Positions 10,013-33,779 of a stretch of 64,000 nucleotides of DNA are shown piece after piece (the stretch's first letter is position 1; each line of letters begins with the position of its first letter). Position numbers and translations under genes: made by a program. This stretch comes from Antechinus flavipes (taxonomy: Eukaryota). The notes under the pieces were generated by a model. The model was not told where the DNA came from. It was given only the letters and a program-made list of their open reading frames with translations, and ran no database searches. Location of the stretch: the NCBI RefSeq assembly GCF_016432865.1, contig NC_067400.1, positions 619,380,001 to 619,444,000 of the forward strand. The letters are read 5' to 3'.

Positions 10013-13000
10013 ATGATCTTGGTCCTTGGGCTCCTCTGTATCCTAGTTGCCCCTGGAGGTGAGTAGAGGGGTTTCTCCGGGGGGAGATGTCTGCCTGCCC
10101 TTCTATGTTGTGGCTCCCCTCTTTCTCTTCCCTGGAAGCTCTGGGTCCGTGTTCCAGCCCCACCCTGGACTTGAGATATGATGGGGGCCCCTCCGAGCTC
10201 CCCCGAGCCTCCGTTTCTTATGGGATGTTGGACACAATGATCTCTAAGGGGTCTTTCCGGCGCTGATCTTCTGTGATCTCAAGAATTCTCTCAGATCTGA
10301 GGGAGCTCTCTGGGACTCGGTCTCCTCCAAAAATGAGGGGGTGGATTCTCTCCCGTGACCCTCAGATTCTCCCTCTCATGGTCGCCCCGGCCTCTCCTCC
10401 CCTTCCGAACCCCAGCCCCTGCTCCCTCTGCCCAACACGCCTTCCCGCTGGCCTCCCCACTCCCATTTACCCTCTGTCTTGACCCAGAATGATAGCACTG
10501 GATTCCAACCGAGAGAACTGGGTTCTGGAGCAAACGACTGCTCTCTCAACTTGGGTCATGGCTTAAAAATCTCTGGGTCTTCTACGGCTCCTCTGTAAGC
10601 TGAGGATGACGACCTTGGTGACCTCTAAAGTTCAGGCCAGCTTAAAATCCTATTTTCCTGTTGGTGTATGACTGNNNNNNNNNNNNNNNNNNNNNNNNNN
10701 NNNNNNNNNNNNNNNNNNNNNNNNNNNNNNNNNNNNNNNNNNNNNNNNNNNNNNNNNNNNNNNNNNNNNNNNNNNNNNNNNNNNNNNNNNNNNNNNNNNN
10801 NNNNNNNNNNNNNNNNNNNNNNNNNNNNNNNNNNNNNNNNNNNNNNNNNNNNNNNNNNNNNNNNNNNNNNNNNNNNNNNNNNNNNNNNNNNNNNNNNNNN
10901 NNNNNNNNNNNNNNNNNNNNNNNNNNNNNNNNNNNNNNNNNNNNNNNNNNNNNNNNNNNNNNNNNNNNNNNNNNNNNNNNNNNNNNNNNNNNNNNNNNNN
11001 NNNNNNNNNNNNNTCTCTGCAAAATGGGGCACAAAGAGTAATCCGGGATTCTTCCTCCCTTTTTTTTGTCATGGGCTCCTTAGACGGTCTGTGGAAGTCT
11101 AGGAATCTCTTCTCAAATCCCCCTTTTTTTACTACTTGAAGGAAATGATAGATGTTCAGGGTGCAGTTCTCTCCCCGCCACGAGCCCCGCGTTAAGAACT
11201 CCCGGATGGATGCATCTCTGACCGCGTCACCACTGGGAGCCTCTGATCCCGGGCCACGGGGAGCGGGCGGCCCCTGCCAGTTTCTGGGCCCGTCCCCCTC
11301 CTGTGCGGTGGAGGGGAGCGGGCCAGTGTCTCCCATCACGGTCTCCCACGACTCTCTTCTCCAGCTTCCAGCTCCAATCGGACGACATGCCTGTCCTGCT
11401 CCGACCCGGGAAAGTGCCACGAGATCACGTGCTCCCTGAACCAGAGCTTCTGCCTTCTCAACTACTCCGGCTCCGGTGCGGGGAAGGCCCTGGGGAGGGG
11501 GGCCGGTGGGGGCAGGGACGGGAGGGGCCTGGGAGCAGCCCCCGGATTTAGGGACGGGGAGGGAATGGCCAGGAAGGGGAAGGGCCGGGTGAGAGGTCGG
11601 GGGCAGGGGGGGAGGCGGCGTTTTGGAATGGGAGGGAGGGGGGCCTCTGATCGCACCCCCTGATGCTGTCCCCCCACCGCTCCACCCGCAGACAAAGAAC
11701 TCTTGAAGAACCTCTGCATGGATAAGCAGACTTGCTGGGATTATGTGCACCAGCTGAACAATATGTCCCATACCAACGTCTCCTGTTGCCAAGGAAACTG
11801 CTCAGGTATGGTCAGCTCCAAGGGGAGGAGGGAAGGGGGAGGACCGGGGTGCCCCAGGAGGAGGACCACAGTGCCTCAGGGGGAGGATCACAGTGCCTCA
11901 GGGGGAGGACCAGAGTGCCCCAGGAGGAGGACCACAGTGCCTCAGGGGGAGGACCAGAGTGCCTCAGGGGGAGGACTAGAGTGCCTCAGGGGGAGGACCA
12001 CAGTGCCTCAGGAGGAGGACCAGAGTGCCTCAGGGGGAGGACCAGAGTGCCTCAGGGGGAGGACCAGAGTGCCCCAGGAGGAGGACCACAGTGCCCCAGG
12101 GGGAGGACCACAGTGCCTCAGGGGGAGGACTTCGGGGGCCCTAGGAGGAGGAGGAATCTCCCGAGGGGAGGGGTGGAGTCCCAGCCACTGACTGAACCTG
12201 ACTGTGACAGGAAGTTCTGGAGAACTTTTAGGCCCTGCCCCCTCCCCCTCCTGCCTCTAAGCCCCCTCCTCGCTCTCTCCGCAGAACCCACCACCACCTC
12301 AGGGGAACACAAGAACACCACCTGTTTCTCCTGCCCAGACTCTGGGCCCTGCCACAGCTTCCTCTGTCCTGCCGGGAAGGACACCTGCCTCAGCATGGTG
12401 GAGGCCCAAGGTGAGTGGCCGGAGTTGCCCCGGAGCTCCCTGGGGGCCCACGAGCGCCCTTTCCTGGCCAGGGCAGAACTCCTGGGCCGGCCGTCCTTGG
12501 AGCCGGGACTGCTGTTGGTGCAAAGGCCTGTGCGGGGACGGGGAGGAGCCTCCCTCGTGTCCCCCCCGCTGAAGCCCAAGGGGATCTCTGACTCCCTCCG
12601 TGGCCTGCAGAGAGTCCCAGCCGCCTTCCAGAGCCCGGAGAGACAGAGACAGAGACGCAGAGAGAGCTGAGAGACAGAGGCAGAGCAGGGGGAGACAGGA
12701 GGGGAACGGGACAGAGAGACAGGGAGGAGATAGTAGGGGGGACGGGGAGGAGAAAGCCCGAAGGGAAAAGGAGGCAGAGGCAGAGCAGGATGGGGGAGAG
12801 ACGGAGGAACGCCGAGTCACAAGTCTCCAGTTGGAATTCTGATTCTGTTTAATTTGTCAGGCGTCTAGCGATGGCTCTCTTTGGCAGCCTGTGAGCCCGG
12901 GGCCACTGGGTGCAAACCGAGCCCCCCTCCCCCTCCGGGGCTCAGGCTCAGTGTGAAGGGGGATTTGGACCGGAGGCCTCCTAAGGTCCTTATGATCCCA

Positions 13001-16693: not shown

Positions 16694-17989
16694 GATTTGG
16701 GGGGAAATGGTACCCAATGTGGGTGAGAAAGGGCAATTCCGAGGGAAGAAGGGAAGAGAAGTCCCGGGTACTTAGACGCTAGGTCCAATTCTCCCGGTTG
16801 CCCTTTGGATCCCCGTAGTCTCAGCCACCCAGAGCCAATCACACGGTGGAGGGGAGGAGGGAGCCCAGGGTTAGGTAGCAAGAGCTCAACCTCATTAAGT
16901 TCTCCAACAGACCCCGAAAACTTGGGAGAGGAGAGGTCTGGTCAGGGCCAAGAGGAAAGAGTCCGCTTCTCGGTCTAGTCTTGATGGAGCCGCACGGCTG
17001 CCCCTCGGTTTCTCGAGATGAGAGACCGTCGGGTTTGAGGCAGAGTCCATATGGGCCTGGGCTGAGCTCTCTTGCCTGTGCTAGCTGTCTCAGAGATGCT
17101 AGGCCCTTCGTGGAAACGAGGGCAGGAGAAATCGGGGGGCTGTGGCCAAGTCCCACTCCACAGTTCCTTCTCCAGACCCCAGCTGTTAGCTCTGTTGCTC
17201 CGATGCCCCAGACCCTGCTCAGAAAAGAGAAATCCCCGGTGTGGGGAGTTTGAGCCCAATCCCCTCTATCAATTCAGATAGCCCGTGGAGAGAAGTTTGG
17301 GGTGTGGGAAGAAGGGTTTCCTATGAGGTCCCCACCTGAATACCTGGAGCTCTCTACGAAGGGCTAGATCCTAGACGTGGGAGTCCAAGGCCCTTTGTCC
17401 CACGGGCCCTCCGGACTGCTTATTCAAACACTCGGAACTTTTCGAGGTCGAGAGAGGCGGAGGGAGGTGGTGGCCGGGCCGTGGCCAGGCCAGGGTGGGA
17501 GGGAACCAGCCTTAGCCCCTGAAGTATCTCAAGTGAGGAGGGGTCGGGGTGAGTGGGAGAGGGGCAGAGAAGCGAGACTGTGATTCTGTTGACTTTTTAT
17601 GGACTGTGGCTTGCTGCTTAGACAATCCCGGGCCCCCCATGCACCAGAGGAGGGGAAGACAGCTTATAAGTGTTGGAAGGGTGTGGTTGGGGTCCCCTTC
17701 CTTCATTTCCATACTCAATCATACTCAAACCCCACCTCCAAAAAAAAAAAAACACAAACAAACAAAAACTCCAGAGCCATCCATGAGACTGGGGGAAGGA
17801 ATGGGACGTAGAGCTAATTCCCCCGTCTCTTTGGAGAGACTGACTGATAAACTGTCACTCCTGGACCCCATGCTTACAGGGGAGAAATAGTCGGAGTTCC
17901 CCACATTCTATTGCTTATATATCTCCTCTCATCTCAGACTTCCTGGTCTTCCATCTCCTGGGGACCCTGAGATAGAAACAAAGGCAAAA

Positions 17990-18565
17990 TGGAAGGGGAT
18001 CCAGGAAGAGAGGAAGACATAGGGTGGGGAGATCCAATGGAAAGGAACCCAGAGAGGAAGAGATGGGATGGGGAGATCCAATGGAGGAGGACCCAGAAAG
18101 AGAGGAAGACCTGGGATGGGGAGATCCAGTGGAAGGGGACCCAGAGAGGAAGACATGGGATGCAGAGATCCAATGGAAGGGAACCCAGAGAGGAAGACAT
18201 GGGATGGGGAGATCCAATGGAAGGGAACCCAGAGAGGAAGACATGGGATGGGGAGATCCAATGGAAGGGAACCCAGAGAGGAAGACATGGGATGGGGAGA
18301 TACGGTGGAAGGGGACCCAGAGAGGAAGACATGGGATGCAGAGATCCAATGGAAGGGAACCCAGAGAGGAAGACATGGGATGGGGAGATCCAGTGGAAGG
18401 GGACCCAGAGAGGAAGACATGGGATGGGGGAGATCCAGTGGAAGGGGACTCAAAAAGAGAGGAAGACATGGGATGCAGAGATCCAATGGAAGGGAACCCA
18501 GAGAGGAAGACATGGGATGGGGAGATCCAGTGGAAGGGAACCCAGAGAGGAAGAGATGGGATGGG
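17990..18565 (+). repeat. 44-nt minisatellite (GGGAACCCAGAGAGGAAGACATGGGATGGGGAGATCCAATGGAA), about 13 copies
   Basis: Period 44 (e.g. 18179 to 18223); accounts for the six repetitive ORFs in the track. Confidence 0.92.
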
Positions 18566-19578
18566 GAATTCCAATGGGTGGGCCATCTCAGGGAATCATC
18601 CCTCCCTTTGGTAATAAAGGGGAGAAATGGGGGTCAGAACCATGGGCTCAGAGATCTCTCAGACAGGAAGGGACTTTTAGTCTGACCTCTAGTATTTTAC
18701 AGAGAAGGAAACTGAGGTCTAGAGTATGAGAGGATTAAAAGCTGGGATCCACATGCCCTATCATTGGCGCCATGTTGGGGTCAGACCAAACTGCCTCGTG
18801 GGTCTAAATGTGAAAGGCTGTGGGAATGACAATAGTTCTGGAGTTAAAAGATCCCACCTGAGTGGTGAGATCTCCTATCCTTCATCTTCTGTGGCCTCAG
18901 TTTCCCTTCCCTGTAGGGACTGGCTGAAGCTGGTTCTCCCAGTCCTTCCCCAGTCTTAATGTCTACTGCTTCCCGAGCCAGCTGCCCACTGATTTGCTCT
19001 GAGAGTCCCTCCATTGCTTTCTTTACCTGTCGGGAAACTGGGAGAAGAATCCCTGCTTTCCCGGCAAAGATGGTAGGCAGCGAGACTGAAATGAGGATGG
19101 GGCAAGGCCTCCAGAAACCCCAGATGTAAGGAGGTCCCGCACCCTCACGCAGACGGGAGCGTCTGGGGGCCGGGCAGGGGGACGAGAAGGCAGAGCCCGA
19201 GGAGAGAAGAGGGGAACAGGATCCGCAAGCGAGCGGCCGAGCTGGGAGCCGTTTCAGGCCCATCCGTCAGGGACGGGCCGCCCGGCCAAGGGCCCGGTCA
19301 GAGACGCCGGGTCAGAGACCCCGCCATCCGCCGGTGCTTCCGAGGCTACCTCCCGTAGCGTAGCCTGGGTAAGGGAGGGGACGGGGCGTTTGCTGGGCCG
19401 CTGGGGCCGGCCGCCTTTCCGCTAACCGCGTCTCCGTCCCCCCTCCCCGTCTCTCTCTCTCTCTCTCTCTCCCTCCCGCCCGTCTCAGGGCCTAGGTGGT
19501 GTGAGCGGCCTGCCCCCTACCCCAAGGAGCACACGCATCGAGACTCCCCCACTCCCCCCCACTCTCCCCAGGGGCGCA

Positions 19579-20976
19579 ATGGCGTCCAAGTCACAAGCCC
19601 CCCCGACCGAGGAGGAGAGCACCATCCTCATGGCTAAGGAAGAGCTCGAAGCTCTTCGGACGGCCTTCGAGCTGGGGGATATCCCGAAGGCTGCCTCCCG
19701 CCTCCGGGAGCTTCTGGGCTCAGCTGAGAGTAGCCGCCTCGATGTGGGCGTGACCGGCGAGTCCGGGGCCGGCAAGTCTTCCTTGATCAACGCCCTTCGA
19801 GGGATCGGGGCCGAGGATCCCGGCGCGGCTCGGACTGGCGTCATCGAGACCACAACCCAGCCCACCCCCTACCCCCACCCCCAGCTGCCTGAGCTCATGC
19901 TGTGGGACCTGCCAGGGGCCGGCTCACCCGGCTGCCCAGCCGACAAGTACCTGAAGCAGGTAGACTTTGCTCGCTACAATTTCTTCCTCCTGGTCTCACC
20001 CCGCCGCTGTGGGGCCGTGGAGACCCGGCTGGCGACCGAGATCCTCCGTCAGGGCAAGAAATTCTACTTCATCCGCACCAAGGTGGATGAGGACCTGGCG
20101 GCTTCTCGCACCCAGCGCCCCTCGGGCTACAGCGAGAGCGCTGTCTTACAGGAGATCCGAGACCACTGCGCGGAGCGCCTGCGAGCCGCCGGCGTCCAGG
20201 ACCCCCGGATCTTCCTCGTGTCCAACCTGTCGCCGGCCCGCTACGACTTCCCTCTGCTGGTGGCCACCTGGGAGCGGGAGCTGCCGGCCCACCGCCGCCA
20301 CGCCGGGCTGCTGTCCCTGCCCGACATCTCCCTCCAGGCCCTGCAGAAGAAGAAGGATGCCCTGCAGGAGCAGGTGCTGAAGACCGCGCTGGTGTCCGGG
20401 GTCATCCAGGCCTTGCCCGTGCCCGGGCTGGCGGCCGCCTACGACGACGCCCTGCTGATCCGCTCCCTGCGGGGCTACCACCGCAGCTTCGGCCTGGACG
20501 ACGACTCCCTGGCCAGGCTGGCCGAGCAGGTGGGCAAGCAGGCCGGCGACCTGCGCTCCGTGATCCGCTCGCCCCTGGCCACCGAGGTCTCGCCGGAGGC
20601 GGTGCTGCGCATGTACGCCCAATCATCGGACGGGGCCATGCGCGTGGCCCGGGCCTTCGAGAAGGGCATCCCCGTGTTCGGGACACTGGTGGCCGGGGGG
20701 ATCTCCTTCGGGACCGTCTACACCATGCTACAGGGCTGCCTTAACGAGATGGCCGAGGACGCCCAGCGTGTCCGGATCAAAGCCCTGGAAGAGGAGGTCA
20801 CCTCCCCTGGCTCCGACGCCCGCCTCGACGTCGCCAGCGGGCCCGGGTTGGAGAAGAGGGGGGCAGGCGAGGGCGGCGGGGAGGATCCTCCAATCTCAGC
20901 CCGCCGGAAGCTTGGACTGCTGCTCAAGTACATTCTGGAGAGCTGGAAAAAACGGGATGGGGTCGAAGACAAATAA
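19579..20976 (+). CDS. IRGC: Immunity-related GTPase cinema (interferon-inducible GTPase 5), intronless CDS, 465 aa
   Basis: MASKSQAPPTEEESTILMAKEELEALRTAFE...GESGAGKS...WDLPG...RTKVD...RKLGLLLKYILESWKK closely follows recalled human IRGC. Acceptor at 19487-19488; AATAAA at 20972-20977. Confidence 0.96.
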   Translation: MASKSQAPPTEEESTILMAKEELEALRTAFELGDIPKAASRLRELLGSAESSRLDVGVTGESGAGKSSLINALRGIGAEDPGAARTGVIETTTQPTPYPHPQLPELMLWDLPGAGSPGCPADKYLKQVDFARYNFFLLVSPRRCGAVETRLATEILRQGKKFYFIRTKVDEDLAASRTQRPSGYSESAVLQEIRDHCAERLRAAGVQDPRIFLVSNLSPARYDFPLLVATWERELPAHRRHAGLLSLPDISLQALQKKKDALQEQVLKTALVSGVIQALPVPGLAAAYDDALLIRSLRGYHRSFGLDDDSLARLAEQVGKQAGDLRSVIRSPLATEVSPEAVLRMYAQSSDGAMRVARAFEKGIPVFGTLVAGGISFGTVYTMLQGCLNEMAEDAQRVRIKALEEEVTSPGSDARLDVASGPGLEKRGAGEGGGEDPPISARRKLGLLLKYILESWKKRDGVEDK

Positions 20977-21134: not shown

Positions 21135-21520
21135 CGGGGCCCGGCGCGGGAGGGAGGGAGGGGGGAGTGTTGGGATGGAGGGGGGGAGGGGGAAGAGAGG
21201 GAGAGGTGTTGGGATGGCGCGGGGGGGGGAGGGGGAAGAGAGGGAGGGGTGTTGGGATGGAGCGGGGGGGAGGGGGAAGGGAAGGGGAGAGGGGTGTAGG
21301 GATGGAGCGGGGGCGGGGAAGGGAGGGAGGGGTGTTGGGATGGAGTGGGGGGGAGGGGGAAGAGAGGGAGGGGTGTTGGGATGGAGCGGGGGGGAGGGGG
21401 AAGAGAAGGGGAGAGGGGTGTCGGGATGGAGCGGGGGCGGGGAAGGGAGGGAGGGGTGTTGGGATGGAGCGGGGGGGGGAAGGGAGGGAGGGGTGTTGGG
21501 ATGGAGCGGGGGGGGGGGGA
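21135..21520 (+). repeat. G-rich about 38-nt minisatellite (GGGTGTTGGGATGGAGCGGGGG...), G-quadruplex-prone
   Basis: About 10 degenerate copies just downstream of IRGC. Confidence 0.85.
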
Positions 21521-21810
21521 GGAGAGCCCATTCAAGGGCTGGTTTCACTTTCTCTGTCCCATAGACGCGTCCTTGCGGGGAAGGGGGCCACTAGGGAGAC
21601 GGGGATTCCCGGCGGGAAGCAAGTGTAAACGAGGGAAATTAGAACTGGGGAACCTGCAGAAAAGGCGTCCCTTTGGGGCGACCTCCCAACCCCCCAAAAT
21701 CTCTCCTTCTGTGGATTCCTAAGGGACCTTTGATGGCAATCCTCTGGCTCCACGCCAACACCCCCGCCCCCTCCTTCGAAGATTCCCCCTCCCCCTCCCC
21801 GAGGAGCCAA

Positions 21811-28550: not shown

Positions 28551-31500
28551 ATGGCTGCCCCGAAGACCCAGGAGTCTAAGACCACCCTGACTCTGAGCCC
28601 GGAGAAGATGGCGTCCATCGGAGAGGTCTTCCAGGGAGACAGCCTGTCCGCCACCTCCACCAAGCTGCGCTCCACCCTCCAGTCCCTGGAGAACGTGCGG
28701 CTGGACATCGCCGTCACGGGCGGGGCGGGCTCGGGCAGGTCCACCTTCGTCAACTCGCTGCGGGGCCTGGGCGACGAGGACCAGGGCTCGGCGCAGACCG
28801 GGCTGGCCGAGACCACGTCGGCCCCGACGCCGTACCCGCACCCCAAGTACCCCAACGTCATCGTCTGGGAGCTGCCCGACTTGGGGACGTCCTCCCTGCC
28901 AGCCGAGCAGTACCTGGAGAAGGTCCTGATGGGCCGCTACGATCTCTTCATCCTGCTCAGCGCGGAGCGCTTCAGCCCCGGCCACGCGCGGCTCGCGCGC
29001 GCCCTCCAGGCCCGGGACAAGCCCTGCTACCTGGTCCGCTCCAAGGTGGACGTGGACGTGGCCGCCTCCCGCCAGCGCCGACCCAGCACCTTCTCTGAGG
29101 AAGGCGTGCTCATGGACATCCGGGAAAACTGCCGTTCCTACCTGCAAGGTGAGGCCCGGGGGCGCGGGGAGGAACGTGAGGGCCGGGGACGCGGGGAGCG
29201 ATGTAGGGGGGGGAGGCGCGTGAGGGGCCGGAGACGTGGGGAGGAACGTGAGAATCCGGGGGGCGCGTGAGGGGCCGGAGACGTGGGGAGGAACGTGAGA
29301 ATCCGGGGGCGCGTGAGGGGCCGGAGACGTGGGGAGGAAAGTGAGGGCCGGGGACGCGGGGAGGAAAGTGAGAGCCCGGGGGCGCGTGAGGGGCCGGAGA
29401 CGTGGGGAGGAAAGTGAGAGCCCGGGGGCGCGTGAGGGGCCGGGGCCGCGGGGAGGAACGTGAGGGCCCGAGGGCGCGGGGAGCGATGTAGGGGGCGGAG
29501 GCGCGTGAGGGGCCAGAGACTCGGGGAGGAAAGTGAGGGCCGGGGACGCGGGAAGGAAAGTGAGAGCCCGGGGGCGCGTGAGGACCCGGGAACACTTGAG
29601 AGGCCCGGGAGCCGGAGAGCGACGTGAGGGCCCCAAGATCATGATCCCAAAGCTGGGAGGGGCAGCTCCCCAACCTTTGCCTTCCGTGGTCACTCATAGA
29701 GCCAGGGGAGCCCACAAGCACTCAGGACTGAGGCGGACCCGGTAGAAACCTCCCTGCAGATTCAGTGACAGATGGGCATGTAACCCGCACCTGGAACCTC
29801 TAGAGACAGGGAACTCACTACCTTCATATCCTAATATCAAATGGGTCCCCAAAGGGTCTGAACAGGAAGTCCTGCAACCTCAGTGACAAACGCTCAGCTT
29901 TAAGGTCTCGGAGTCTCCCCAGGAAGGATGTGGGTATCCTCAGTGTCCCAGAATAGGAAATCTCAAACCTGGAGCTCCCCAGGGGGCTATTAGCTTGGTT
30001 CATACATGAACAGCACTTCTCCCTGCCCTCAGCTTAGGCAGGTCATTCTTTTTCTCTGGAACTCAATTTCCTCATCTGGAAAAAAAGGACATTGAACTAA
30101 AAAGCCCCAAAGGGACCCCCGATGGAAACCTTTACTCCTGTACTCCCAGAAAAACAAATGATGATCTAGCCTCTGCTTGAAGACTCACGGTGATAGGGAG
30201 CTCACTACTTGCACTCACTCACTTACTTTTTTTCTCTTTTTGCTGGGGCAATTGGGGTTAAGTGACTTGCCCAGGGTCACAGAGCTGGGAAGTGTTAAGT
30301 GTCTGATATTTGAACTCGGCTCCCCTTGACTTCAGGGCTGGTGCTCTATCCACTGAGTCATCTAGCTTTCCTGAAGGGAGCCCCTTTCACTTTTGAAGAT
30401 CTCGACAGGATACATCTCTGTGTTGAGTCCACTCTTTATGTCTTCCATTCACTGACTCAGCTACAGGTGAGGGAAAGGAAAAAAAGTCTTCAAAGGATCA
30501 TGGGTTCATCCCTTTGAAGCTGGAAGGGACTGGTCTCCTCATTGTACAGATAGAGAAACAGGTCTCCACAGGGCAAGAGATCTCATTTCTTGAGATCTTA
30601 CGTAAAACAGCCAACATTGACATGCTGCTTAAAGCAAGACTCACAACACGTTTTAGAAATATTTGGGGACAGCTAGGTGGTGCAGTGGGTAGAGCACCAG
30701 CCCCGGAGTCAGGAGCACCTGAGTTCAAATCTGGTCCCAAGCACTTAGCACGTCCTAGCTGTGTGACCCTGGGCAAGTCACTTAACTCCAATTGCCTCAG
30801 GAAAAAAAATCATTTTATTCATATGCCAACCCTGGGACGAAGGTGCTGCTATTATTCCCATCTTGGAGATGGGCCGGGAGTGGGAAATTTTCCAGGGCGC
30901 TCTGATTAGTCGAAAATGCTTCCTTGTACCACTAGGAAGTGGCCTGGGTTTGCGCATTGTGTCTCCCACGGAGGGGTATGTGTTCCACGAGCCCCCACAG
31001 GTGTGTTTACTTTGTAAAAGCAGCCGGCGAGGCCACGGGTCCAAAGCAAAGTCATTTGATGAGGTCACATGGTAAGGAAAGTCCCCACGGACCCGGATCA
31101 GGCTCCCACAAGTTGCATCCGCAGTCGGGGGAGGGGGAGGGAGAAGATGCACTTGTGAAGGGGCACACGCAGACAATACGAGTGTGGCCGAGACCCGCTC
31201 TTCCCAGGGCACCAATATGTGCTCCTGTAGCTAGGCAACACATGGAGCAGGGTACCAGTGACAAGATGCTTTGCTCGCTAGCGGCCTCTTGTGGCCGACC
31301 TGTGGCCAGCACCGGCTGCTCGGGGGCAGGTAGGGCCACGGGAATTGTGGGAGTTTCTCTCACTTGCCAATTTCTGGCCTCAGTTGGAATCCTTAGTTGG
31401 GGGAGAACTTTTTTTTCTTCCTGGGAAAAAAGTTGACAATTGTCCTGCTGCAGTTTACTAGAAAGTAGATGTCCTGGGTGACCCTGGGAAAGTCACAACC

Positions 31501-33779
31501 CCAGTTGCCTCAGCCAAAAAAAGAAAAAAAAATAATAGATGTCCTTGCGTAAGACTTGCATAACCTCTTCTTGAGAAAAGCCCTTCCCATTTCTCAGAAT
31601 CTTCTGAGATCCTTCAGATGTGGTCACGTCATCCGGGATACAGAAATGGGTCCGTCGCAGCCAGCTTTCTGTCCTCAGCTTTCTTTCTGGTGGTGTTTTT
31701 TTACTTAGTGATCGCTGAGTCCCGTATCTCTGTTCCTTCATGTTTCGGGTCAGCAAATCCCGCACTAAGCTGTATTTCAGCCAACGATTGCTATAGAAGC
31801 TGCCCCCCACTTGCCAAGGCTTTGTACCCTTTACGTTTAAGTGCCCCGGAAAAAGCCCCTTCTCCCTGCCTTAGTTGCAGCTCTGATCAGAAGCCTTGAC
31901 AGGAAGGGGCAATAATTTGGAAAAAGCCCCCTTCACTCCACCTTAGGTACAGCTCTGATCAGAAGCCTTGACAGGAAGGGGCAATAATTTGGAAAAAGCC
32001 CCCTTCACTCCACCTTAGGTACAGCTCTGATCAGAAGCCTTGACAGGAAGGGGAAACAACAACTTGCTAAAGAGCGCTGGTTTTTTATTTTTATTTTTTA
32101 TTGTCTGGAAGTGGTTCAGACCTGGGATTTCATCAGCGCAGGGGCTTCCTGTGTAGAAACTTCCTCTGGAGAGACCAGTGGTTAGCTCCCCCTTCATGCT
32201 CAGCCTTAGGGGGTTTCACGGGGCAGGTGGGAGCGGGAGAGCGGGTTCTGTTCTGTGCACGTCTTCAATTATGGACAAGGTGCTCTCGGAACACGGCAGG
32301 TGGGATGGAGGCCCAGCTTTCAGGGCGTTCTCAGCCCTCCGGAGACAGCTCCACTGGGCAGAGGTTTGTGGGCCGTCCGGGACGAGGAAGCACTCAGTTA
32401 CCGAGGGCACGGGGCTGAATTTGAACTCGGGACCCTAGCTTACAGAGTGGAGCGATGGTTCTGTCTGCACCTGAGGCAGAACGGGGAGCCGAAGGGCGGA
32501 GAGGTGGATTTCAGCTTCATGCTGGGGGGGAGGAGGCCGGATTCCAAGTTGGAGGTCCTGGGTTCTAGTCCTGCTCCACCACGTGACTAAATCACACACG
32601 TTCTGCTGGTCAGTTTCCTTCTCAGCCACAGGAGGGGGTCGTTGCCTCGGAGTGTTTTCCACTTTTAGATCCAGGATCCTGATAATAGCTCTCCAGATGT
32701 AGATGTCTGGTCAGGGGGTGAGTTCCCCACCGTGGGAGGTATCCAAGCCAGGTGATCGCTCCTTTCCGATTCTGGGTTTGTGCACAGTCAGGGGCCTCCC
32801 AATCCCTCCTGCTCCAGGATTTAGTGATTCAGAGAAGGAAAGCAGGTAGTGAGTGTCCCGTCTTGGGAGGTGGATGGAGGCCCCACTCAGGAATGGGTTA
32901 CCTTGGATACCTCCCCTCCCCGAAGTTCCCGCCGGGACTCTGATTCTGTCCCCCAGAATTTGAGGACTCCTGACTCTCAAATCGGGGTGCGGTGAGAGAG
33001 CAGCCCCCGGCCCAGAGCATCCTGGGAGGCCCCCCAGGACGGGGAGGGGGGGGCTTTGCCCGAGCTCCGGCCGAGGGGCCCCCGGGCTGAGCCTCCAGGA
33101 GGCGGCCGGGGGCGCCCAGGAGCCGGGGCCCGGGCAGACGCGGGGACCCTTGTCTTCCTCAGCGGAGGGGGTCACCAAGCCCAAGGTCTTCCTGCTGTCC
33201 ACGTTCGAGCTGGACAAGTTCGACTTCCAGCTGCTCAGCGAGGTCATAGTGAGGGACCTGGAGAGCTCCAAGCGCCACGCCTTCCTGCTGGCCCTGCCCA
33301 ACGTGTCCAACGCCGTCCTGGAGAAGAAGGCGGGCTCCATGCTCCAGCACATCTGGCTCGTGGCCACCGTGGCCTGCACCGTGAACCCGCTGCCGGTGCC
33401 CGGGGTGCCCGAGGTGGCCTGCGACCTGGGGCTGCTGGTGCGGGCCCTGTCCGGCTACCGCCGCGGCCTGGGGCTGGAGGCGGGCGGCCTGCAGCGGCTG
33501 GCCCAGCGCACGGGCGGCTCCCTGCAGGCCATGCAGAGCCGGGTGTGCGGGCCGCTGTGCGAGGCCAGCCCGCGGCAGGTGATCGACTTCCTGGGCCGCG
33601 CCTGCGGGAGCACCACGGCCACCTTCGCGCAGGAGCTGGCATCCCTGCCCGTGCTGGGCGTGCTGTCGTCCTGCAGCTTCTCCTTCGCCACCGTGTACCA
33701 GATGCTCCGCGCCTACCTGGACAAGGCCACGGCGGAGGCCAAGAAAACCCTGAGCCAGGCCTTGCCCACGGGCCAGTGA
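28551..33779 (+). CDS. Second, divergent immunity-related GTPase (IRG/p47 family), two coding exons, 404 aa, non-canonical G1 and G3
   Basis: Exon A 28551-29148 (CAA G|GTGAGG) joins exon B 33163-33779 (ttcctcAG|CG) in phase 1; 1215 nt open. IRG hallmarks: LENVRLDIAVTG, TPYPHPKYPNV, RYDLFILLS, RSKVD, PKVFLLS, FLLALPN..LEKK, PLPVPG, SFATVYQML. Confidence 0.9.
29149..29625 (+). repeat. GC-rich minisatellite (gtgagggccggggacgcggggaggaa-type units) starting at the IRG2 donor site
   Basis: Tandem units visible; accounts for the repetitive antisense ORFs. Confidence 0.85.
30225..30372 (-). mobile_element. WSINE1-like SINE
   Basis: Reverse complement of the SINE consensus (ggggttaagtgacttgcccagggtcacagagctggg...tttgaactc). 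Confidence 0.8.
30665..30810 (+). mobile_element. WSINE1-like SINE, near full length
   Basis: ggggacagctaggtggtgcagtgggtagagcaccagccccggagtcaggagcacctgagttcaaatc...gcctcaggaaaaaaaa. Confidence 0.88.
31076..31086 (-). promoter_or_regulatory. Canonical NF-kB site in the IRG2 intron
   Basis: GGAAAGTCCCC = GGGGACTTTCC on the minus strand (Ig-kappa/HIV kB sequence). Confidence 0.5.
31878..32052 (+). repeat. 72-nt direct tandem duplication x2.4
   Basis: cagctctgatcagaagccttgacagg at 31878, 31950 and 32022. Confidence 0.9.

Follow-up and report, generated by a model that had tools for sequence, protein, structure and literature searches.

The gene described here lies in a 64,000-nucleotide stretch of the Antechinus flavipes genome (contig NC_067400.1, positions 619,380,001 to 619,444,000; hereafter the window) and encodes a paralogue of IRGC, the testis-expressed, non-interferon-inducible member of the IRG family also called IIGP5 or CINEMA. 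IRGs are usually sorted into GKS effectors, GMS regulators and the badly degraded IRGQ proteins, which form a poorly understood third group. Judging from its sequence, the paralogue of dasyurid marsupials is probably a pseudo-GTPase, or 'quasi'-GTPase, which possibly still binds nucleotide and would not hydrolyse it. In the dasyurid lineage the GTPase centre of an old IRGC paralogue would have been dismantled stepwise, leaving a protein that would act through the protein contacts of the IRG fold. The initial annotation of the window had proposed a possible third IRG subclass or pseudo-GTPase regulator, a hydrolysis-impaired partner of IRGC in the manner of the GKS/GMS pairing. It was right in spirit, because the changes at residues needed for hydrolysis are real and the rest of the protein is under purifying selection, but the 'third subclass' and the analogy with an IRGC regulator go too far, and the existing concept that fits best, that of the 'quasi-GTPase' IRGQ proteins (Bekpen 2005), was overlooked.

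The altered motifs reported at the outset are present in the codons of the window. On the forward strand, positions 28719-28742 read GGC GGG GCG GGC TCG GGC AGG TCC, giving a P-loop GGAGSGRS with its arginine codon at 28737-28739, and GAG CTG CCC GAC at 28869-28880, preceded by TGG at 28866-28868, gives the G3 motif W-ELPD. Both motifs recur in the devil (Sarcophilus) and the dunnart (Sminthopsis), the proteins of which differ from that of Antechinus at 12 and 30 residues, respectively, and the AGG, GAG and GAC codons are identical in the three independent assemblies. At the P-loop, AGG of these three species stands against AAG in Dromiciops and platypus. Since the same codons are found in all three genera, the GRS/ELPD combination is not private to Antechinus, and neither faulty sequencing or assembly nor a mutation restricted to the sequenced animal can account for it; in addition, runs of two organisms contain 100% of the sampled exon-1 words. 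The coordinated changes in an intact frame are thus real and fixed in three dasyurid genera.

To relate the changes to known biochemistry, the protein can be read against Irga6. In the HMMER alignment, residues 30-195 of the paralogue correspond to Irga6 49-214, ungapped and with an offset of +19, which places R63 at Irga6 K82, E87 at E106, T89 at T108, E107 at D126 and D110 at G129. An aspartate in place of the G3 glycine puts a negative side chain at the contact with the gamma-phosphate. The Irga6-K82A mutant comes close to the wild type in its binding of GDP and GTPgammaS and shows no GTP turnover (Hunn 2008, PMC2532785), while Irga6 Glu106 is essential for hydrolysis, with no tested substitution supporting it (PMC3042988). 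The codon at the Glu106 position is GAG (Glu) in Antechinus and GGG (Gly) in devil and dunnart. Mapped on the accepted dasyurid tree, this pattern implies two changes within the family, so that constraint on the position seems to be gone; the catalytic switch-I glutamate position would now be drifting (E/G/G) among the three genera. The switch-I ETT, originally described as retained, is accordingly present in the Antechinus genome only and is G-A-T in devil and G-T-T in dunnart. Because the P-loop lysine, both G3 residues and, in two of the three genera, the catalytic glutamate are gone, hydrolysis and the GTP-driven switch have very probably been lost, as judged from the Irga6 mutants and from general knowledge of GTPases. 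Nucleotide binding may persist, because the guanine-specificity motif G4 SKVD (retained, as first noted), the P-loop glycines and serine and the G2 threonine are all kept in the dasyurid protein, a situation comparable to that of Irga6-K82A.

The departures of the dasyurid protein are concentrated in the active site. Dasyurids depart at nine of the 84 positions with at least 90% conservation among 47 homologues of non-dasyurid origin. Five of 12 nucleotide-binding or catalytic positions are affected vs four of the 72 others (Fisher p=0.0024), or 3/12 vs 2/72 if only departures fixed in all three genera are counted (p=0.019), the list of 12 having been drawn up beforehand from the standard G1-G4 motifs, yet after the motif table had been seen. 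Homologues from reptiles, amphibians and fish, and IRGC as well, have 1-12 departures each at the conserved positions and none at the twelve. The active site of the paralogue thus tends to erode, mainly in marsupials and most strongly in dasyurids, and in combination with purifying selection elsewhere this reads as the signature of a pseudo-GTPase.

Purifying selection is evident from comparison of the three dasyurid genes, each of which comprises 404 codons, lacks stops and has conserved splice sites. The ratios of nonsynonymous to synonymous substitution rates (dN/dS; Nei-Gojobori) are 0.22 for Antechinus-devil, 0.28 for Antechinus-dunnart and 0.31 for devil-dunnart, and in the two pairs tested against neutrality the result was significant (p=4e-5 for Antechinus-devil, p=1.5e-7 for Antechinus-dunnart). 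The ratios are alike in exon 1 and exon 2. The coding sequence is under purifying selection in dasyurids. Their stem branch is long in the protein tree (0.31 vs 0.11-0.15 for other australidelphians), and dividing branch lengths at codon positions 1+2 by those at position 3, a cruder stand-in for branch-specific codon models, gives 0.48 on the stem, 0.24 in the crown and 0.34 in Dromiciops. This points to faster protein change on the dasyurid stem followed by renewed constraint; the branch-length comparison gave no evidence of dN/dS >1.

To establish the age of the substitutions, we considered the distribution of the paralogue. Database searches retrieved orthologues from marsupials (Antechinus, Sarcophilus, Sminthopsis, bilby, sugar glider, tammar, Dromiciops and a didelphid), platypus and many laurasiatherians (carnivores, bats, cetartiodactyls, a rhinoceros, a mole and a shrew), and no primate, rodent, afrotherian or xenarthran orthologue turned up in them. 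In a quick maximum-likelihood tree the paralogue forms one clade (support of 98 in the Shimodaira-Hasegawa-like approximate likelihood ratio test, SH-aLRT), which is sister to mammalian IRGC (96), and the 'IIGP5-like' proteins of sauropsids, amphibians and fish fall outside the two. All orthologues besides those of dasyurids and otariid seals have the P-loop lysine. The G3 motif is DLPG or DMPG in platypus, the didelphid and most placentals, DLPS in sugar glider and tammar, ELPN in bilby and ELPD in dasyurids, and its glycine is deleted in Dromiciops. Because the G3 motifs and P-loop states are graded across lineages in this manner, the losses can be ordered. The G3 glycine would have been lost early, in the australidelphian ancestor; replacement of the G3 aspartate by glutamate would have followed on the stem common to bilby and dasyurids, and that of the P-loop lysine by arginine on the dasyurid stem. 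The GRS/ELPD state is thus derived and limited to one marsupial family, within an old, pan-mammalian IRGC paralogue that otherwise carries GKS; it does not represent a deep third subclass.

A similar substitution occurred in otariid seals. Their P-loop is GGTGSGRS (Eumetopias, Callorhinus and Zalophus, with GRL in Zalophus), and the G3 motif of Eumetopias and Zalophus is WDLLG. The P-loop serine is replaced by leucine in Zalophus and in the Weddell seal. Because walrus and most phocids have GKS, the otariid lysine-to-arginine change is independent of the dasyurid one. Pinnipeds appear to be a second lineage in which the active site of the paralogue is eroding. Among the proteins fetched, predicted IRG domains with a GRS or GRT P-loop also come from a softshell turtle, from an agamid lizard and, in a protein called 'IRGQ-like', from a lungfish; the same change thus recurs independently in otariids, turtle, lizard and lungfish. 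In the IRG family, the P-loop lysine has been replaced repeatedly, and GRS is a derived state that recurs rather than the mark of a deep subclass. As a separate observation, GRS, GRT, GRF or GAS P-loops occur in mostly two-domain predicted IRG proteins of softshell turtle, agamid lizard, lungfish, soft coral and gar.

The gene has two coding exons (Table 1), which after splicing give a product of 404 residues. Exon 1 encodes residues 1-199 and the first base of codon 200, covering the helices at the N terminus and the larger part of the G domain; exon 2 is preceded by a polypyrimidine tract and AG, and the frame is regained via a split Ala codon. Against the Pfam IIGP profile (PF05049; cut-off of 24 bits), exon 1 matches positions 1-184 (E-value 5e-60) and exon 2 positions 187-374 (E-value 3e-19), with 43% and 34% identity to IRGC, respectively. 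Jointly the exons make up one complete IIGP/IRG domain, and the paralogue belongs to the IRG/p47 GTPase family. An AlphaFold2 model based on 43 homologues has a mean predicted local distance difference test score (pLDDT) of 84 and a predicted template modelling score (pTM) of 0.83. The top 38 Foldseek matches of the model in the PDB are all Irga6, Irgb6, Irgb10 or GM4951 (template modelling scores of 0.64-0.78), the best being Irga6, Irgb6 and Irgb10 (0.72-0.78), and the predicted fold is of the Irga6 type, with helical domains on either side of the G domain, one N-terminal and one C-terminal. The spliced protein is residue-for-residue identical to XP_051845524.1, 'interferon-inducible GTPase 5-like [Antechinus flavipes]'; RefSeq thus includes an annotation of the gene. 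Literature searches by candidate names of the paralogue (IRGC2, IRGC-like, IIGP5-like) found no study of the gene and retrieved only rice germplasm codes and a paper on mouse IRGC1. An item in Bekpen et al. 2005 probably represents this paralogue in dog.

Table 1. Positions in the window of the IRGC paralogue, its motifs and the neighbouring IRGC gene.
Feature	Positions	Strand	Remarks
Coding exon 1 of IRGC paralogue	28551..29148	+	ATG at 28551; donor CAAG/GTGAGG
G1 / P-loop GGAGSGRS	28719..28742	+	Arg codon AGG 28737-28739 in place of Walker-A Lys (Irga6 K82)
Switch I E-T-T	28809..28817	+	E87 = Irga6 Glu106 (catalytic), T89 = Thr108
G3 W-E-L-P-D, replacing W-D-L-P-G	28866..28880	+	Irga6 D126 to E, G129 to D
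G4 S-K-V-D	29040..29051	+	Guanine-specificity motif, kept; K and D invariant in 43/43 aligned homologues
Phase-1 coding intron	29149..33162	+	4014 bp
Exon 2 of IRGC paralogue	33163..33779	+	Acceptor ttgtcttcctcAG, ...cttcctcAG at 33161-33162
IRGC proper	19579..20976	+	465 residues, single coding exon, GESGAGKS / WDLPG, upstream tandem neighbour

The site and phase of the intron (G/GTGAGG ... YCAG/CGGAG, split Ala codon) are common to Antechinus, devil, dunnart, Dromiciops and cat. No intron interrupts the orthologue of platypus or an alligator homologue, and a sardine homologue has a single one located 3 codons upstream in phase 0; identity with the fish irgf intron was ruled out by position and phase in the one fish checked (sardine). 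This distribution suggests that the intron of the paralogue was either gained in stem Theria or lost several times independently. A GC-rich tandem repeat (29144-29590, units of ~27, 46 and 73 nt) begins exactly at the exon-1 donor, and each of its units holds the donor-like hexamer GTGAGG. The exon-1 open reading frame continues into this repeat, and therefore many orthologues are mis-predicted as running into the intron.

IRGC proper is the upstream gene, and its motifs in the window are those given by the initial annotation. On the strand that also carries IRGC, the paralogue begins 7.6 kb past the IRGC stop codon, and this head-to-tail tandem holds in Antechinus and devil. In the bat Myotis lucifugus, a gene model of 709 residues fuses IRGC and the paralogue in one protein, which shows that the IRGC-then-paralogue order holds in bats too. 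The two genes are nearest neighbours also in the mammalian part of the tree and share the IIGP domain and fold. However, the paralogue is not an IRGC orthologue: it forms its own clade and carries the intron, which is therian. IRGC has one coding exon, GKS/DLPG motifs, a C-terminal extension and a dN/dS of 0.03, with one residue different between Antechinus and devil, whereas the paralogue is shorter, evolves about ten times faster and has lost catalytic residues in dasyurids. No long direct repeat indicative of promoter duplication was found between the upstream regions of the two genes, and a scan for RFX X-box-like patterns gave 7 matches vs 4.2 expected, which is not above chance, and the region upstream of the paralogue had none. 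The surroundings of IRGC are repetitive: a 44-nt tandem array of ~13 overlapping copies lies upstream of it (in 17963-18654) and G-rich repeats of ~41-43 nt follow shortly after the IRGC stop codon (in 21148-21553), both giving rise to long spurious open reading frames on both strands. Runs of N, representing assembly gaps or masked stretches, occupy 10675-11013, 62679-62974 and 63002-63609.

With respect to expression, 46% of the exon-1 words, vs 9-11% of those of the whole 5.4-kb stretch, occur in several small runs that are guessed to be RNA and come from a closely related organism. These shares are roughly as expected for exon-only (spliced) sequence of a relative, a weak and indirect indication. 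Exact-protein look-ups with the three dasyurid proteins returned chromosome-scale genomic records only and no cDNA contigs.

Several observations weigh against a maintained pseudo-GTPase. The tree comes from a quick search and has a long IRGC branch. Several other marsupial orthologues and that of the shrew also have one or two departures at the twelve key positions. Lysine-to-arginine is a conservative replacement, and the presumed absence of hydrolysis in the dasyurid protein is argued by analogy with Irga6. Constraint is moderate, the dN/dS of 0.2-0.3 being about ten times that of IRGC, and the guessed-RNA runs provide the only hints of expression. Finally, the lysine-to-arginine or serine-to-leucine changes of otariids and some phocids, together with those of marsupials, could equally fit a slow dispensability of the whole paralogue.

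The alternatives differ in how they accommodate these data. According to one, the hydrolysis-dead paralogue is dedicated to regulating IRGC, negatively or positively, and forms a heterodimer with it via the G-domain interface, as in the GMS/GKS pairing or as proposed for IRGQ. An eroded active site under purifying selection is what such a role would leave, and both regulatory heterodimers of quasi-IRGs and dimers of tandem IRG pairs were proposed by Bekpen et al. (2005); IRGC as the specific partner is suggested by linkage, that is, by the head-to-tail arrangement in Antechinus and devil and by the fused bat model. However, the canonical motifs of most mammalian orthologues imply that the ancestral role was that of an active GTPase, the near-invariance of IRGC shows no sign of co-evolution, residues of the Irga6 catalytic interface are poorly conserved across the paralogue clade, and the two genes have in common neither an RFX-type promoter motif above chance nor a long promoter duplication. 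We regard a dedicated IRGC regulator as unlikely.

Another possibility is that the gene is decaying, the active-site changes being an early sign of relaxed constraint on a dispensable paralogue without a maintained function in dasyurids. The clustering of departures in the active site, instead of an even spread, speaks against it, as do the intact frame of the same length and the conserved splice sites in three genera, the dN/dS significantly below 1 and the equal constraint on exon 2 and exon 1. Decay would, on the other hand, fit the patchy record of the gene, which these searches did not find in primates, rodents or other non-laurasiatherian placentals and for which whales, rhino and panda have 'low quality' or truncated models; the repeated motif erosion in pinnipeds and other marsupials and the faster evolution relative to IRGC point the same way. 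Taken together, we think it improbable that the dasyurid gene is on its way out.

Within the pseudo-GTPase reading, a more specific version may be envisaged. The P-loop arginine might pair with the acidic G3 residues, which would replace the phosphates and leave the pocket locked or empty; the protein might serve as a non-catalytic partner of IRGC in sperm, and the burst on the stem might reflect the extreme sperm competition of semelparous marsupials. This is a long shot. If true, the locus would be a living intermediate in the origin of an IRGQ-like quasi-GTPase from a canonical IRG, still beside IRGC.

An ordinary working GTPase of slightly altered mechanism, with arginine serving for lysine and glutamate for aspartate, is very unlikely. 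Both replacements keep the charge, GRS recurs in several predicted IRG domains, and SKVD, the P-loop serine and glycines and the G2 threonine are all in place. Against this, the G3 glycine has become aspartate, the equivalent of Glu106, all tested substitutions of which failed in Irga6 (PMC3042988), is glycine in two of the three genera, Irga6 without the P-loop lysine shows no GTP turnover (PMC2532785), and a working enzyme would not be expected to be hit at four of the 12 key positions.

The probable pseudo-GTPase of dasyurids does not fit the GKS or GMS groups. Its P-loop, GGAGSGRS in all three genera, lacks the lysine of the GKS subfamily, and DxxG and the catalytic glutamate of that subfamily are represented by ELPD and by glutamate in Antechinus or glycine in devil and dunnart. 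As in IRGM and the GMS group, the P-loop lysine has been replaced naturally in an otherwise intact IRG, and in GMS proteins Glu106 is replaced too (PMC3042988). However, the paralogue has arginine instead of methionine, has an altered G3 motif as well, shows no sign of interferon control, and falls within the IIGP5-like clade as sister to mammalian IRGC, in a tree containing no IRGM sequences. The histidine found at the position of Irga6 D164 goes back to the ancestor of the whole paralogue clade and is thus not a GMS-like acquisition. The residues affected are the same as in the Irga6 K82A and E106X mutants, but those are laboratory mutants of an interferon-inducible effector, whereas the dasyurid changes are natural, combined and fixed, with arginine, not alanine, in the P-loop. 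Otariid orthologues resemble the dasyurid one in the independently acquired arginine and in their general erosion, and differ from it in having kept the G3 aspartate and glycine and the Glu106 equivalent.

The closest match is with the quasi-IRGs. Modified IRG homologues received the name 'quasi IRG' (IRGQ), together with the proposal that they pair with functional IRGs in regulatory heterodimers (Bekpen et al. 2005, PMC1297648). The dasyurid protein has modified nucleotide-binding motifs, namely G1, G3 and, in two of the three genera, switch I, and shares with IRGQ the doubtful GTPase function and the linkage to canonical IRGs (PMC1297648). The gene is not IRGQ itself, an identification ruled out by its IRGC-like motifs and length. 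Mammalian IRGQ, a separate gene, is extended at its N terminus and radically altered, whereas in the paralogue just three or four catalytic residues are altered, in one marsupial family, and GKS orthologues are extant. The dasyurid paralogue looks like an early stage of an IRGQ-type process.

The quasi-IRG concept is thus known already, and the dasyurid gene is most likely a young quasi-IRG derived from an unstudied paralogue of IRGC. Its practical weight is modest, that of an evolutionary case study and not of a new mechanism. The paralogue is missing from human and mouse, and hence from nearly all work on IRGs, and has remained almost unstudied; it is an old mammalian gene, and its catalytic residues have been lost repeatedly, both in dasyurids and in sea lions. 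Should it act together with IRGC, it would bear on the function of the latter in sperm motility and in the fibrous sheath of sperm (PMC9232189). For the IRG family, the locus would represent an intermediate, a datable conversion of a canonical IRG to a probable pseudo-GTPase in one lineage only, with GKS orthologues persisting in sister marsupials for direct comparison.

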